A stretch of DNA of 64,000 nucleotides from Oculina patagonica (Eukaryota): contig NC_135765.1 of NCBI RefSeq assembly GCF_052425735.1, positions 14,260,001 to 14,324,000 of the forward strand, given 5' to 3'. The translations under genes were made by a program, and so were the position numbers. Below, piece after piece: positions 16,613 to 42,710 of the stretch (position 1 is its first letter; each line of letters opens with the position of its first letter). The notes under the pieces were generated by a model, which made no database searches, had not been told where the DNA came from, and saw only the letters and a program-made list of their open reading frames with translations.

Positions 16613-17243
16613 CTAGAAACAACGGACTTCTGTAAGGATTCATTTAACGTCACAATACTTTCAGATGGTAAAAAAGGATAATGGTTGTGTAAAACGTAGG
16701 CCGGTGTATAAAAATCAAACCCCTTGAACTTTTCTTTTCAAAACACTCGTGATAGCTACGTACTTAGAACGTACGTAAACTCCTCGAAACTGTTGTGTTG
16801 TGTCGTGTTAGCTCAGTGTCATTAAGATAATTGTTAATCATTCTTTTTTTTTTTAACTTTTAAAGAGTCCACCACGGAGTTTGGATCAGGGTAATAAATA
16901 AGCTTTGAAAGAAGAGACTTCTTTTGCAGGGTTGACACATTCTTTATTTTTATCAGGCGCCTTAGTTAAAACAATATCAAACTGTCATTTTCAATCTTGC
17001 AGCCCGGTCTTGCAACCTACAAGCTATCCTAAGCAATCGCCACAGAACTTTACACAAAACAAGTAAAAAGCGTGGAGACCCGTTCTAACTACTGATAAGT
17101 TGTTTACATCGATTCGAAAGGTCTCTGACAACTGATACTTCGGACAGAAATTTTCACTGACACCGGAAACCCAAAATTATTGACACCTGTCAATTACAAC
17201 TCAAACCCCTTTGTATTTCATTTCTCCCCTCTAAAGAACGCGC

Positions 17244-18308
17244 CTACTCTCCGAGTGCTCTCTTAGGAACAGGAACCGGCCCAACCACTTGGAAACTAAC
17301 AGCTGGGGAAGAAAGGTGAGCTAGCTTTTCCTGGATACCGGTATTTGCGTTTACATGTATGTTACTAGCACGTCCTTCGGTATATTCTAAGTAATCGTCC
17401 ACTGCGACAGTGTACGTTCCAGGCTTGACCATGTTGTAACCAGAAGAAAGGTCAAACTTCGACGAGAGGGTCTCCCCAGCAGCAATGGTCACAAAATTAC
17501 GACGCCCCGGATCTTCGCGCTTCATCATGATACCTTCAAATTCCAATTTTTTCCCATCTCGGGTGACGACCAGACCTTTCGGTCCAAGCTTGTTCAGCGG
17601 TGTGTTCCACGTGAGCACAGAATATGCGCGGTCACCGATGTTCTTCAAGTGGAAATCACACTTGACATCCTCGGTAGTTTGATAAGAAGGCTTACACACG
17701 ATGGAAGCGGAGAAAAGCCTGTTAAAGCAAACATGAATTTGTCAACATATGGGCGTCAAACAACAAATTGGGTAACAAATTTGAGCCGAGTATTTTTGCC
17801 ACTAGAGAAATCTTCAAAGAACCTTTGGAAGAGCTTTCATTTCTAAGCAGGAAAACAACAAGAGCGGAAACAACAACAAAATCAACAACAACAACAGAAA
17901 CAACAAGAACAATGACAACAATTTCATCAGACATTAAAAACACCAATGATTAAACAACGTGAATCTCCGTATACTTGTACTCAGGCCGAAGTGTACTGAA
18001 CCAATTCTTTTCGTGGAATAATTGACATCGTGAATGGTAATTCATGGACAGTTATTTTTGTTGAGGGGTCGAGAAAAATAAACCAACAACGTGTTTGCAA
18101 ATTCTCGGAGATATTTTCACGTCAGTTCATCTCCTTCCTGCCTTTATCTGCCTTTCTTAATTTTTTTTTTATTAAGTGTATTTTTTTTAACTACAATCAC
18201 TCACTTGGTTTCCAGAGAATTCGACCGTACAGTGTCGTCTCCATTTACCGTCATTGCAACTAGCAGGAACGACCAGACAAGTATCTTTGCCAGCAACATG
18301 ACTTCCAT
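17244..18308 (-). CDS. Gene B: secreted M35 propeptide-only protein (no catalytic domain), complement join(18205..18308,17244..17718), 192 aa; could be a truncated pseudogene
   Basis: Exon 1 on minus: MEVMLLAKILVWSFLLVAMTVNGDDTVRSNSLET-AA|gtgagt. Acceptor tttaacag|G at 17719, same phase-2 intron as paralogs. Exon 2 aligns with the whole propeptide of genes A/C/D. TAG falls in the LG[QE]xARSLE motif. AATAAA at ~16948..16943. Confidence 0.75.
17853..17922. repeat. Degenerate (ACA)n microsatellite in gene B intron
   Basis: aaaacaacaagagcggaaacaacaacaaaatcaacaacaacaacagaaacaacaag. Confidence 0.8.
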
Positions 18309-35607: not shown

Positions 35608-36831
35608 ATGGCAGTCTGGATAATCTTGTTGATATTGGGGATGGCAAATGGTGATCAAAATGTGGAATTCGATATTTCGGAAACCAAGTAAGTATAGTCG
35701 ACACTATAAGAAAACAAGAAATACTCACAAGTTCTTTTAGACATGAAATCGCTAGAAGGCAGTGTGCAAAAACACTAAGCATTTTAATGTCAGGTTAGAA
35801 AAATTTGAACTCGTCAGTGCAAATATTTCTTTCTTGAAAATGAAGAGTCAAAAAAATCCAAAGCGCTGCATATCACTTTATTTTATCCGCCATTACAGAC
35901 CTTCAAAGCAGTCCAGACCGGGTTGTCACTTGGTTTGGAACACTGACTAGTTCAGATACAGTTGCCCAAAAGTTTCATACATTGGAGGCGGTGCTAAGAT
36001 CAGGGACAATTATTTATTTCTACAGAGGCGAACACTGTTTTTTTTTGCGTATGCTTTTGCAGAAACGCGCTCAATTTGGTTTTGTTCAAATTATGAAATC
36101 TGCCCTTGAAAATCCCTTACTGAATTGTGACCAATTGTACCCGACGGGAATCATTGACACCTTTCTGTAGTAAGAACAAAAGAACTTGTAAAAGTACTTC
36201 TCCATTAACTGCTGTAAAGAGTTCGTTGCTCGTTAGACGATAGAAAAGTCACATTTTAATATAATAAATTCCATTGGTAAAAGTTTTATACATTTTCTCT
36301 TAACCCTATTCAGACCGGGCTTTTTAGGACCTTCTCTGACCATGTAACTTCCAGAATATTTAAGTAATCACAATGAAACTTATAGGATGTATAGTAAGTT
36401 CAAACATCTTTCTTTTGGTATACGTCAAGTGGGATGATGACGTCGCATCACGTGACAATTACATCATGATGTCAAAGCAGCCGCCATCTTGGATCCGCCA
36501 TCTTGGATTTCAAAACTTTTCCAAAATGCCAGAAAACCACCCAAAATTACGGCAAAGTACCCCACAAAATCAATAAAACTGTTCTTAAAGACCGTAAAAA
36601 GGTAAAAATTAATTGCATTTCAGTTAAATTTCATTAATAGAAACACGAAAATTACAAATTTGGGAAAACATGCCTATCAAAATGCCGTTGCCATGGTGAT
36701 GTCAAATTTCTGACACAACATCCTATCCTACCAATTTGTTCCCAGATAAATTTTAGATAAACTCAGAAATTTTGGCAGGGTCTGGTTGAATCGTGAAAAA
36801 GTTATAAGCGTTGAAAGTTAGTGCGTACCTC

Positions 36832-36870
<39 letters not shown>

Positions 36871-38583
36871 TGAATAGGGTTAAATATGCTCATTTCATTT
36901 GGTTTGCACAGAGTTTTCTCTGCCTCCCTTGAGTGTTCACCGAGATACAGAACAACGGAAAAAATTGAATGCCAATTCAATTTAAAGAACGAGGGTCAAC
37001 GAGACTTTTCTGTGCTAAAGTGGCGCACACCGCTGCAGCAACTGACGTCTGATTGCCTGTCTGTCACGCGGAATGGAAACAAGATACCATACGATGGTAT
37101 TTTCATAAAGCGCAGTACTCCTGGCCCTGATCAGTTCGTGCTCGTGGCAGTTGGACAGACCGTGTCATCAACGTTTGAAGTTTCTGAAGGATACGACATA
37201 AGCAAAGCTGGAACGTACTCTATAGCAGTAGACACTTATATAGAATATGTAGTAGGTAGTGTAAAGGGTATGAACGAACCTGGTAAACCAGGTATCCCCA
37301 TCAAAATAAGTCATTTATCTTCGCCATCAGTTAGTTTTCAAGTTGTCGGCAGAAAGGCGGGTTATGGAACTCTGGGGCAAAGGGCTCGCTCTCTTGAAAA
37401 GGAACGTAAACGTACCTTATCAGTTGGGAACTCTCCTAAACGTAGTGAAAGTGTTAATGTTCTTCTAGATCCTGTTGTCAAGGGAAATGCAGCCCAAAAA
37501 GAACTAACAAAAGAAATTCACCGCGCTTCATACCTTTATATAGAATACGCCATTTCAGATCTCCAAAGCAGTCCAGACCGAGTTAGAACTTGGTTTGGAA
37601 CAACAAGTGCAGACTTTCTTATCACAAAGTTCAGGGAAATGGAGAGGTTGTTAAGATCAGATACATTTACTTATGTCCATGGAGGGGATCACTGCTCTAA
37701 CATATATGCATACACTTGGTTAGGATCACGCACAATGCACCTGTGCGGTTTGTACGAAAGTTCCTCAAGTCTTTCGGGATTTTACAGTAAAATGACAACA
37801 ATTGTGCACGAGTTAGCCCATGCTTTAGCTTACATCGACGACATTGGTTACGGTGTAAGTTATTGCAAAAACTTGGCCAAATCGGCCCCTCACCAAGCCG
37901 CTAATAATGCGGAAAACTATTGCTATTTTGCAGCATCGCTATTTCCATTTAACTACGGATTTGATGCTATGACTACATTATCAAACGGTTATACATACCT
38001 GTTTAAAGGGAATATTTACGTGCGATATACAGATACCAATGCTAGAACTCTTAACCCTGCTTACCCAACGCTGATAAATGACGGTTTTGACAATTTGCCT
38101 GAAAACTTTACTCAAGGGTTTGATAGTTTTATCTTTAACAAACTATTCGGGCATCCCTATGCTACAAGGGGCGATCAGTATATTCGATTTACAGATGGAA
38201 AGGCGTCAACAGTTAGTAAAGGGTATCCACACCAAATTTATGGTAACTGGGGTGTTAGCCGTAGCATGAGCACAGGTTTTGATTCTATGACGCAACTACC
38301 AAATGGCAAAACCTATGTCACAAAGGGTCCCTTGTATGTACGGTACTCCGATAAAGCCCTGGAAGTAGTGGATTCTGGGTATCCCAAAAGACTCGATTCC
38401 GGTGAGTGGGGAAATTTGCCAGAAAACTTTAAAAGTGGTTTTGATGCGATGGAGGTCATCCCGAATGGCCAACTTTATGTGATTAAGGGCACTGAATATC
38501 TTCGATATTCCAACCCGTTTTCTCACGTTGACGCTGGGTATCCCTTGCCTATAAAGGGAAATTGGGGAGACGTTCCCCAATAG
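35608..38583 (+). CDS. Gene C: secreted M35 metalloprotease with C-terminal four-bladed hemopexin-like domain, join(35608..35687,36912..38583), 583 aa
   Basis: Exon 1 MAVWIILLILGMANG-DQNVEFDISET-AA|gtaagt; acceptor ttgcacag|A at 36911. Propeptide and HELAH + YIDDIGYG follow, then four GFD[AS]...Y..[KR]G..Y[VIL]R[YF]...[GA]YP..[IL]...[WF] repeats from ~37957. Confidence 0.93.
35855..36050 (+). pseudogene. M35 catalytic-domain fragment stranded inside the intron of gene C
   Basis: cgccattacagaccttcaaagcagtccagaccgggttgtcacttggtttggaac...gctaagatcagggacaattt matches 37548..37670 (cgccatttcagatctccaaagcagtccagaccgagttagaacttggtttggaac...ttaagatcagatacattt). Confidence 0.8.
36304..36879. mobile_element. 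piggyBac-type MITE with TTAA target duplication in gene C intron
   Basis: TTAA|CCCTATTCAGA...TCTGAATAGGG|TTAA. The paralogous introns show the empty site (gene A: cattttctctaaaatatcttttcatttgg). Confidence 0.92.
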
Positions 38584-40053: not shown

Positions 40054-40560
40054 AACCAGGTATCCCCATCAAAATAATTCATCAATCTTCGCCATCCGTT
40101 ATAGAGTTTCCAAGTTGTCGGGAGAAAGGCGTGCAGGTAATGAAACCCTGGGGCAAAGAGCGCTGTCTCTTAGAAAATAAAATAAACGTACCCTATTGGT
40201 CGAGAACTCTCAGAAACCTAGTGATCCTTTAAATGTTTCTCTTGATCATATCGTCGTGCTATATATATATATTTGCAGCAGAACACGAAGAGACAGAACA
40301 AATTCACTGCGCTGCATACCATTATATAGAATCCGCCATTTTTAGATCTCCAAAGCAGTCCAGACCATCTTGAAACTTGGTTTGAAACAACTAGTTCATA
40401 CTTTGTTTGAGAAAAATTTAAAATGATGGAAAGGCTGTTAAGATCGGACACAATAACTTATGTCTTTAGAGGTCCAAAATGCCGAAGTAAATGGTTAGCG
40501 TACGCTTCAAAAGGATCGCGCAGCCAGAATTTTTTTCTGCGGGTTTTACTAGTTCCTCGC
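40054..40560 (+). pseudogene. M35 pseudogene fragment (end of propeptide plus first half of catalytic domain)
   Basis: aaccaggtatccccatcaaaataa, ctggggcaaagagcgc, gatctccaaagcagtccagacc and gttaagatcggacacaataacttatgtc, with frameshifts and stops. Confidence 0.88.
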
Positions 40561-40574
40561 AAGTCTTAAGGGAT

Positions 40575-41866
40575 GCTTATTCGATTCTTTAGGACCTGGA
40601 TTGAACATCAGCCTGATTCTACGTGGTTGCGTTTTCCCAAAAGGGCTTAAACTGTACATTTAAAGTATTAAACTGCCACTTTTTGGTGCATTTGGAGTGA
40701 AAATAAGGCTAAATCTACATAGTGGCAGTCATCACAATGGCCAAAAAATCTTCATTTTAGGTTCCCCATGTGGCACTTTCTTATTCCATTCTCTTAAACC
40801 TGGAGTGAACAGTAGCCTGAATCCATGTGGTATCAATTTTCCTAAAACATGCTAAAAGGTCCGGACTGTACTCTTTTAGTTTCAAACTGCCAGTTTTTGG
40901 TGGATCTGTAGTGAAAATAAGGTCTTACTGCACGTGGTGGTATTTCATCACAAGGGCCAAAGATCATTTTTATGAGCTCCCATGTGGCACTTTCTTTATA
41001 TTCGATTCTTCTGGACCTGAAGTCAACATTAGGCTGCATCCAAGCGAAGAATTTTTTCTCAAGAGGCCCAAACTGTACATTTTAAGTTTCAAACTCAGCC
41101 TGACAATTTTTGTGTATCTTGAGTGAAAATGAGGTTTAACCTACGTGGTGGCATTTCATCACAAGGACCAAAAATCTTTATTTGAGCTTCCCATGTGGAA
41201 CTTTATTATTATCTCTGACCAGGAGTGATTATAAGTCCGAATCCACGTGGTTGCCTTTGCCCCCAAATGCCCAAACTGTACATTTTAATTTTCAAACTGC
41301 CAGGTTTTGATGTATCTTGAGTGAAAATAACGCTTTAACTATGTTGTGGCATTTCATCACAAGGGCCAACAATCTTCATTTTGAGCTCCCCATGTGGCAC
41401 TTTCTTTTTTTTATTTGATCCTTTAGGACCTGGAGACAACGTTACGCTGAATACACGTCTTGGCGTTTTCCCAAAAAAGCTCAAACTGTACATTTTTAGT
41501 TTCAAACTGGCAGTTTTTGGTAGATCTGGGGTGAAAATTCGACTTAATCACTGTGGTGGTATTTTATCACAAGGGCCAAAACATCCTCATTCATTTCTTT
41601 ATGTGGAATTTTCTTATTCGATTTAGCTGGACCTGGAGTGAACATTAGCCTGAATCCACGTGGTGGCGTGTTCCAAAAGGCCCAAACTGTACATTTTGCG
41701 TTTCAAACTGCCAGTTTTTGGATAATCTACGTGGCGGCATTTCATCACAGGCCAAGAATCTTCATTTTCAGTTCCCCATATCGTACTTTCTTATTCGATT
41801 CTTTTTGACCTGGAGTGAACATTAGGCTGAATCCACGTGTTTGCGTTTTCCCCAAGAAACCGAAAC
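40575..41866. repeat. ~205-bp minisatellite, ~6.3 diverged copies
   Basis: gacctggagtgaacattagcctgaatccacgtgg...aaactgtacatttt..tttcaaactgcc recurs at ~40591, 40797, 41013, 41217, 41426, 41629 and 41807. Confidence 0.9.
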
Positions 41867-42680
41867 TGTAACAGTAGACACTTATTTAGAATATACAGTA
41901 GGTAGTGTTAAGGGTATAAACGAAGTTGGAAAACCAGGAATCCCCATCGAAGTAAGTCATCTTTCACTGAAATTGACAAGGGAAAGGCCGATAAAGGAAG
42001 CTTGGGTCAAAGCGCTCACACTCTTGAAAGAGAAAATAAAAGTACCCCATCGGTCGGGGATCCTCGACAATGTAGTTTAAAAATTCTGAATTTTTTTTTC
42101 TTAAATCCTGTTGTTCAGGTGAATTCAGCCCAGAAAGCAGAGATAACAAATCGACGTGTCACATACCAACCATTGTAGACGAATAAGTCCATGTTTTAGC
42201 GTGTACAGACGACATAGTCTACGGGGTTAGCGTCTGCATACAGCTGGCCAGATCAAGTCCAGATGTCGCCAATAATGCGGAGAATTACCAGTTTTTTTTT
42301 CGAAGAGACGAAAATTTTGCTTCCGACCGACTGAAAGAACACGATTGCAACTGACTGATCGCATGCGCATGCTCTCTCATGTGACTACGGAGTGACTAAG
42401 ACTGGAGACGAGATAGAATTACGGATTTGATGTCATAACCAAACTATCTGACAGCCATATTTACTTGTTTAAAAAGGCAATTTGTAAGCACGATATGCAG
42501 ACAGCAATATTTTAAGTCATCGGGTCTCTATAAACGGCGATTAGACAGTCTTATTTTGAAAAGATATACGGGCGTGCTTATGTCATAAAGGCCAATAGAT
42601 GGTTGGCTACAAAGATGGAAAAGCAACATCAGTTAATAAAGGATGTATTCGTGCATAATTTTCTACTAACTGGGATGTAC
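41867..42680 (+). pseudogene. Second M35-hemopexin pseudogene (internally deleted)
   Basis: VTVDTYLEYTVGSVKGINEVGKPGIPIEVSHLS; then acagacgacatagtctacggggttagc...aataatgcggagaattacc; then acggatttgatgtcataaccaaactatct and gatggaaaagcaacatcagttaataaagga (blades 1-2). Confidence 0.85.
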
Positions 42681-42710
42681 GCGGTATGTGGTCCAAATGG
42701 TATAAGCTCG

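Follow-up and report, generated by a model that had tools for sequence, protein, structure and literature searches.

Organization of an M35-hemopexin protease gene in Oculina patagonica

The stretch of DNA analyzed here (the window) comprises 64,000 nucleotides of the genome of the stony coral Oculina patagonica (C8:14260001-14324000), and its GC content of 33-42% and sparse open reading frames (ORFs) are typical of an animal genome. It contains an intact gene in which a protease of the M35 (aspzincin) family is fused to a hemopexin propeller, along with two copies that have no hemopexin part, a propeptide-only ORF and several fragments. The intact fused gene is the subject of this report. Our analysis points to a secreted zymogen, the body of which was most likely built in bacteria and reached the ancestor of stony corals as a single piece.

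The fused gene was visible as an ORF that is open over 565 amino acids (aa) (36886-38583, + strand). The ATG at 36886 is intronic, and joining two exons (Table 1) gave a translation identical to the annotated 583-aa protein P0001 ('extracellular protease-like isoform X2'). The splice sites consist of a GTAAGT donor at 35688 and an acceptor CAG ending at 36911. An earlier note, made from the letters of this DNA, had begun the gene at 36912, precisely where exon 2 opens; since this start is an exon boundary, the signal peptide (MAVWIILLILGMANG) fell outside the interval that it described. The signal peptide claimed in that note is real, but it lies on exon 1, ~1.2 kb upstream. The signal peptide is carried by a separate exon, and the remaining protein is encoded by one exon. 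The GC content of the gene is 43% vs 37% in its flanks. The intron itself carries an M35 pseudogene fragment (35847-36038; aa 226-288, 55% identity) and a high-copy interspersed repeat at ~36198-36881, where contig depth was very high, and a run of ~32 C residues abuts the acceptor.

Splicing was also examined in contigs from sequencing runs. The match of a contig of the public run X1 begins at 36912, and the letters preceding it read D-V-S-E-S-K, which resembles the end of exon 1 and not the intron, so that a transcript with this intron removed exists in a paralog or a very close relative. The RNA status of this run is our guess, and the matching contigs, which were 92-99% alike, originate in relatives or in paralogs of the gene. 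In run X2, one contig stops at 35687, the end of exon 1; among all these contigs only the 36912 junction was informative. None of the runs recorded as RNA held the gene, the top share of sampled words being 0.26.

Domain architecture and predicted structure

Pfam assigned Aspzincin_M35 (PF14521) to the protein at 89.2 bits (cut-off 30, E 4.4e-25) and Hemopexin (PF00045) at 89 bits in four stretches (cut-off 21.3, E 2e-25), and PF02102 scored 20.5 bits on the same protein, under its cut-off of 27. A profile of 15 fused homologs matched residues 34-339 of the bacterial protease AsaP1 (2x3a), propeptide included, with an E value of 3.8e-51, and it also matched the fungal enzymes GfMEP and deuterolysin, matrix metalloproteinase 14 (MMP-14), vitronectin and plant hemopexin-fold proteins. 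An AlphaFold model built on the fused-homolog alignment had a predicted local distance difference test score (pLDDT) of 86.7 and a predicted template modeling score (pTM) of 0.85 for the whole chain, with a pLDDT of ~90 in the propeller (aa 373-580). When this model was compared with solved structures by Foldseek, the N-terminal two thirds matched AsaP1 (2x3b, E 1e-20), and the catalytic fold matched GfMEP with template modeling (TM) scores of 0.79-0.83 and deuterolysin with 0.70. The C-terminus matched the hemopexin domains of MMP-14 (3c7x; TM 0.84, root-mean-square deviation (rmsd) 2.6 A over 211 columns), MMP-2 (1rtg; TM 0.81, rmsd 2.1 A) and MMP-13 (1pex; TM 0.82); its neighbors also included vitronectin, plant hemopexin folds and albumins, and lectins. 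Pfam, profile and structure matches therefore bear out the layout that the earlier note had proposed, i.e., propeptide, catalytic domain and hemopexin domain in the order of the M10 MMPs on a fold that is not M10, and the repeats model as a hemopexin propeller, which we predict with confidence to be four-bladed.

The four blades are 53, 53, 54 and 48 aa long, and each opens with GFD[AS], at aa 376, 429, 482 and 536. In an alignment of the 15 fused homologs, each blade had a single Asp that was invariant or nearly so (D378, D431, D484 and D538). Two further features that had been claimed for this protein were found as described: aa 373-583 contain no Cys, hence the blade I-IV disulfide is absent, and a hinge is lacking, the last catalytic helix (NAENYCYFAASL) passing directly into blade 1 (FPFNYGFDA). 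Upstream of the catalytic domain, a basic linker (aa 198-214) is presumed to be the region of activation cleavage.

Table 1. Coordinates of the fused gene and of the parts of its product in the window.
Feature	Position	Strand	Evidence
Exon 1: start codon and signal peptide MAVWIILLILGMANG, then DQNVEFDISET and 2 nt of Lys27	35608..35687	+	tblastn of P0001 aa 1-27, 100% identity; spliced translation
Phase-2 GT-AG intron, 1224 nt	35688..36911	+	splice sites, spliced translation
Exon 2: propeptide, catalytic and hemopexin domains, TAG stop (38581-38583)	36912..38583	+	ORF, Pfam, spliced translation
AsaP1-type propeptide, all-beta (aa 28-197)	36913..37422	+	profile vs 2x3a; beta strands with pLDDT ~90; Foldseek 2x3b E 1e-20
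Basic disordered linker (aa 198-214), VGNSPKRSESVNVLLDP, with EKERKRTLS before it	37423..37473	+	only internal stretch with pLDDT <50 is aa 199-209
M35 aspzincin catalytic domain (aa 215-372)	37474..37947	+	Pfam PF14521, alignment to GfMEP 1g12
HELAH (aa 326-330)	37807-37821	+	alignment
D337	37840-37842	+	alignment
Y340	37849-37851	+	alignment
S1' position E361	37912-37914	+	alignment to GfMEP 1g12
S1' position C364	37921-37923	+	alignment to GfMEP 1g12
Four-bladed Cys-free hemopexin propeller (aa 373-583)	37948..38580	+	Pfam PF00045 x4, pLDDT ~90, Foldseek
Blade 1	37957-38115	+	repeats in sequence
Blade 2	38116-38274	+	repeats in sequence
Blade 3	38275-38436	+	repeats in sequence
Blade 4	38437-38580	+	repeats in sequence

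Catalytic residues, S1' pocket and relation to known proteases

The zinc ligands H326, H330 and D337, the catalytic base E327 and the Y340-G341 pair lie within HELAHALAYIDDIGYG, with D337 and Y340-G341 in the segment AYIDDIGYG. H326, E327, H330, D337 and Y340 were invariant across the 15 fused homologs and align to H117, E118, H121, D130 and Y133 of GfMEP (1g12). With these residues intact, the protein is predicted to be an active M35 zinc endopeptidase.

The S1' pocket appears to be different. Asp154 and Glu157 of GfMEP reportedly bind the P1' lysine, and the corresponding positions of the coral protein are E361 and C364, so that the acidic pair is incomplete, with Cys in place of Glu. The pocket reads NADNHEYF in AsaP1 vs NAENYCYF in the coral protein. 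At the 364 position, the four fused Oculina copies that were compared carry Cys, Cys, Arg and Gln, and three of four hemopexin-less Oculina paralogs (P0016, P0017 and P0037) carry Glu, the fourth (P0015) having Leu. Because Glu is replaced by Cys here and is kept in most hemopexin-less copies, specificity has probably shifted between the two forms, suggesting that they may cut different sites, and strict Lys-N specificity is not assured for an enzyme with Cys364.

AsaP1 of Aeromonas salmonicida (2x3a/2x3b/2x3c), a secreted virulence factor of this bacterium, is like the coral protein in its propeptide-aspzincin unit, its HExxH motif, its Asp ligand and its Tyr, but it is 343 aa long and ends at the catalytic domain, without a propeller. 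GfMEP (LysN; Grifola frondosa, 1g12, 167 aa) and Aspergillus deuterolysin (1eb6, 177 aa) have the same catalytic fold and zinc site, but these fungal proteins are single-domain mature enzymes. The assertion that characterized M35 enzymes have no hemopexin domain therefore holds for the solved AsaP1, GfMEP and deuterolysin. Hemopexin domains are generally treated as the part of animal MMPs that recognizes substrates. With the MMPs (M10A; MMP-14, MMP-2, MMP-1) the coral protein has in common the order of signal, inhibitory propeptide, zinc protease and four-bladed propeller; however, the catalytic folds differ, and the third zinc ligand is Asp in the coral protein vs His, with a Met-turn, in the MMPs. 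Pfam gave no match to the M10 catalytic domain (PF00413) on the coral protein, the cysteine-switch motif PRCG is absent from it, its propeptide being of the AsaP1 type instead, and the flexible hinge and the blade I-IV disulfide of MMPs are missing.

Distribution of the fusion in corals and bacteria

A word-based protein search yielded ~35 full-length fused proteins, including other Oculina copies and a Porites cluster (50% identity). Furthermore, full-length fused homologs were present in three bacterial phyla, all of them uncharacterized. The fused protein of Heliobacterium undosum (GTO91_12410; P0035) is 37% identical over 98% of its length. A scan of genome contigs found a 545-aa ORF with 30% identity on a 1.36-Mb contig of Actinomadura sp. 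3N508 (L001:5989-7626). An exhaustive representative search, which gave 3450 matches at E <= 0.001, found a 760-aa protein of Taklimakanibacter deserti (WP_119270449; P0143) that has extra hemopexin repeats. Among the top 150 representative clusters of this search (50% identity level), both domains were present in 22. When the propeptide and M35 part of the Heliobacterium protein was used as a protein-search query, no match was returned but itself.

The bacterial fused genes sit among bacterial genes, i.e., MFS, GGDEF-EAL, MCP and CheW genes in Heliobacterium and PriA and ABC transporter genes in Taklimakanibacter, and their GC content matches that of each host (57-66% in the three bacteria vs 43% for the coral gene). 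Like the coral propeller, those of Heliobacterium and Actinomadura are Cys-free; the bacterial M35-hemopexin genes differ in having no intron and more regular blades. No signal peptide was found in four bacterial-type fused genes (Heliobacterium, Taklimakanibacter, Actinomadura and the metagenomic L014), where no more than 20 codons lie in frame ahead of the start. The full-length fusions of these three named bacteria contradict the idea of an architecture newly put together in animals, which the 'convergent assembly' of the earlier note had implied. That note had also considered that the architecture might prove to be already widespread and characterized; it turned out to be moderately widespread and automatically annotated, and our literature searches found no paper describing an M35-hemopexin protein.

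Among eukaryotes, the named matches were all from stony corals, and the fusion was also found on other eukaryote-like contigs. Of the contigs examined, one (L013) has a 225-bp interspersed repeat with 93-95% identity to Oculina and is therefore coral, while another (L012) has in common with Oculina DNA only short simple repeats and therefore does not come from a close coral. A second large eukaryote-type group, ~40% identical, lies on sparse eukaryote-like contigs of up to 2 Mb, and a search of protein clusters with a member of this group (P0020) returned generic M35 clusters only. On the eukaryote-type side of the M35 tree described below, we also noted two M35 genes, arranged in tandem and lacking hemopexin, whose sparse contig comes from a highly fragmented NCBI assembly (L030; GCA_015179865.1, contig JAAGOD010026082.1).

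An M35 protein of 299 aa in AlphaFold DB (A0A1X7U3H2, 'Lysine-specific metallo-endopeptidase domain-containing protein'), which by its accession series we take to be from the sponge Amphimedon queenslandica, aligned at 19% identity only, which suggests a separate lineage. In this sponge, 76 M35 genes have been read as bacterial transfers (Conaco et al. 2016, PMC4784904), the family being tandemly amplified and having acquired introns, and M35 was reported in that study to be absent from animals except a sponge. The word hemopexin has 0 occurrences in that paper.

Origin of the propeller

A tree of hemopexin domains was divided by a split with a support of 98. One side held the propellers of four Oculina MMPs and a mite MMP, giant actinobacterial proteins, and the Actinomadura and Taklimakanibacter fused genes; the other held every M35 propeller of eukaryote type, the fused genes of Heliobacterium type and several stand-alone proteins from bacteria. 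The four Oculina hemopexin exons used here lie just downstream of M10 catalytic exons and thus belong to real MMP genes. Forcing the M35 and animal MMP propellers into one clade was rejected, with a log-likelihood difference of 82 units and p = 1.2e-5 in the approximately unbiased (AU) test. The coral propellers lay inside a bacterial grade, away from those of the Oculina MMPs, and the eukaryote-type fused propellers were nested in successive bacterial branches comprising Dokdonella, Spirulina, Sericytochromatia, Heliobacterium and metagenomic fused genes. Identities gave the same picture: bacterial hemopexin proteins that stand alone or are differently fused (Prochloron, Dokdonella, Spirulina, Sericytochromatia and Pseudoalteromonas) were 44-54% identical to the coral M35 propeller vs 31-42% for animal propellers and 33-42% for the other hemopexin exons of Oculina itself. 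The lineage of the coral propeller is thus of bacterial type and differs from that of the MMPs, as had been suspected from the appearance of the blades.

Because the Actinomadura-type and Heliobacterium-type genes use different hemopexin lineages, the fusion in bacteria probably had more than one origin; the Actinomadura and Taklimakanibacter propellers fall in the other half of the tree from the coral's, and their fusion was probably a separate event.

Other hemopexin sequences were encountered in these searches. The closest named bacterial propeller is a stand-alone one from a metagenome-assembled genome of the ascidian symbiont Prochloron (L002, ~6001-6660; 54% identity to aa 373-583). The Actinomadura family (Thermomonosporaceae; genomes L018-L023) commonly encodes giant proteins (P0147, P0151 and similar) of ~3400-5000 aa, each containing 7-12 hemopexin-like stretches, and these dominate the hemopexin-only matches of the representative search; hemopexin-only matches occurred in 27 of the 201 sampled Actinomadura-family genomes, nearly all in frames of ~3600-4700 aa. 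In Oculina, Peptidase_M10 matches were found at C8:14334497-14334796 and 14361655-14361930, ~10 and 38 kb past the end of the window, so MMP-type and M35-type genes are neighbors on the chromosome. C13 carries a large MMP array (34.25-34.37 Mb), and a cluster of hemopexin matches is located at C5:25974609-25978589.

History of the protease and loss of the propeller

We also inferred a tree from the propeptide and M35 part, in a careful version of 60 rows and a quick version of 112 rows; it is unrooted. The eukaryote-type group was separated from the bacterial sequences by a split of 99/99, and the stony corals formed a clade (100/100) within which the fused Porites sequences were basal. Two groups without hemopexin were nested among fused forms. 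One is a pan-coral clade (97/95) with members from Acropora, Orbicella, Stylophora and Oculina, and the other is a recent Oculina trio (100/100) that falls in a 98/95 group together with P0001-P0003. Both domain trees show the same fused subgroups, indicating that the two domains travelled as one unit.

Relics of the lost domain were also recovered. The hemopexin-less paralog at 52253-53425 has decayed propeller pieces behind its stop codon, at 53321-53425 and 53476-53622; the latter is 51% identical and contains stop codons and an internal deletion. Together, the nested hemopexin-less clades and the propeller relics indicate that the fused form is ancestral in corals and plain M35 is derived. 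Two other sites have weaker blade remnants: 42417-42701, close to pseudogene pieces that span 40056-42482, and 55707-55866.

Two arrays on C8, one spanning 13.27-13.31 Mb and the other 14.06-14.35 Mb, contain all M35 copies of Oculina. These comprise approximately six fused copies, two of them broken, among >20 paralogous pieces on C8. The propeptide-only paralog of the window (17199-17720, - strand) is a 151-aa ORF that is 49% identical to aa 27-197, and the C8 array has at least three further copies of this kind at other positions. Finally, a 200-aa ORF at 57099-57701 (- strand) that contains SRGHMDP resembles an exon for a DNA/RNA non-specific endonuclease domain.

Discussion

The gene is integrated and domesticated in its host genome, as seen from its intron, signal exon, host repeats, host-like GC content, and tandem paralogs and pseudogenes on a contig of chromosome scale. 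The explanation that we favor overall, to which we assign a probability of roughly 0.6, is that it encodes a secreted zymogen derived from a transferred bacterial unit. The history within this explanation seems to us rather probable: the propeptide-M35-hemopexin body would have been built in bacteria, probably more than once, and would have been passed whole to an ancestor of stony corals, perhaps also to other marine invertebrates. A signal-peptide exon would then have been gained and host base composition taken on, after which the gene would have been amplified in two arrays of one chromosome and the propeller lost at least twice. We infer the direction of transfer from the bacterial grade that surrounds the coral propeller, from the occurrence of M35 in bacteria and fungi, and from the structure of the gene.

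Several observations weigh against this account. The fusion is rare and patchy in bacteria, having been found in 1 of the 201 sampled Actinomadura-family genomes, and even the bacterial fused proteins most similar to the coral one reach no more than 37-40% identity. The M35 tree, being unrooted, does not prove a direction. Transcript support consists of the one junction contig from run X1, with its guessed RNA status. As for the structure of the product, the rigid packing of the propeller is a property of the model, judged by pTM and pLDDT.

An alternative is a reverse history, in which the gene passed from an animal to bacteria, or an ancient fusion that was inherited vertically with massive loss. 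The far greater abundance and diversity of the fusion on eukaryote-type contigs than in bacteria, its scarcity in the Actinomadura family and the rootless M35 tree would all fit such a history. It is hard to reconcile, however, with eukaryote-type propellers that nest in successive bacterial branches, with a family that is bacterial and fungal and reported absent in animals beyond a sponge (PMC4784904), with a one-exon coding body that has its signal on a separate exon and bacterial copies without a signal, and with stony corals as the only named eukaryotic matches; we consider it unlikely. The version implied by the earlier note, in which corals themselves joined M35 to a hemopexin domain from an animal genome, e.g., from an MMP, is much less probable still. 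Raw material for it is nearby, as Oculina has many MMP hemopexin genes, some of them ~10-40 kb from the window, but the split and the AU test set the coral M35 propellers apart from the four Oculina MMP and mite MMP propellers, stand-alone bacterial propellers are closer in identity than animal ones, and full-length fused homologs occur in three bacterial phyla, where gene neighborhoods and GC content exclude animal contamination. Finally, the bacterial affinities of the family could be taken to mean that bacterial or symbiont DNA was mis-assembled into a coral scaffold, or that the gene is dead. We give almost no credence to this, because the GT-AG intron comes with a signal exon and contains coral interspersed repeats, the flanks have ~37% GC, paralogous pieces are abundant on C8, the longest contig of the assembly is recorded as 34 Mb, the 583-codon frame is open with all catalytic residues intact, and an exon-exon junction contig was found.

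With regard to function, the product of the transferred gene would be a secreted zymogen with a eukaryotic signal peptide, an AsaP1-like propeptide that would fold and block the enzyme, an M35 zinc endopeptidase and a hinge-less propeller. After secretion, a convertase or the enzyme itself would cut the basic linker and so release the propeptide. The rigid propeller would then act as a targeting or exosite module that brings extracellular substrates to the cleft, candidates being matrix, mucus, prey and microbial surface proteins. Judging from what is known of the families, we put linker cleavage, propeptide release and an exosite or targeting role for the propeller at about even odds. Alternatively, the propeller may be no exosite and may instead bind haem, polyamine or metal, as serum hemopexin and plant albumins do, or mediate oligomerization or anchoring to mucus or skeleton matrix; it would then add localization or regulation and not substrate choice, an idea that overlaps with our preferred explanation. 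Its structural neighbors include plant albumins, lectins and vitronectin besides MMPs, the conserved Asp residues, one per blade, face the central channel in the manner of hemopexin folds that bind ions, many bacterial hemopexin proteins stand alone without a protease, and the persistence of propeller-less paralogs indicates that the protease works without it. Nevertheless, the hinge-less and confidently modelled junction fits a module coupled to the active site better than a tethered anchor, and a non-exosite role seems to us the less likely one, though worth serious consideration.

More tentatively, the bacterial cassette may have given corals a second protease system of MMP layout, independent of the MMPs, in which the forms with and without propeller differ at a pocket residue. 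If this is true, the propeller is a recurrent portable targeting module for zinc proteases, having been joined to M10 and, probably twice in bacteria, to M35. In the coral protein the same module, lacking both hinge and disulfide and probably of bacterial ancestry, is attached to a zinc protease of another family, and the fused and propeller-less paralogs, lying side by side, offer a clean comparison for what the propeller contributes to a protease. Stony corals join sponges as animals with M35 peptidases. The gene is also a candidate, and a well-documented one, for the transfer of an entire multidomain enzyme between kingdoms, in this case into reef-building corals, where an expanded family of secreted proteases may bear on mucus and matrix turnover, feeding and the handling of microbes.

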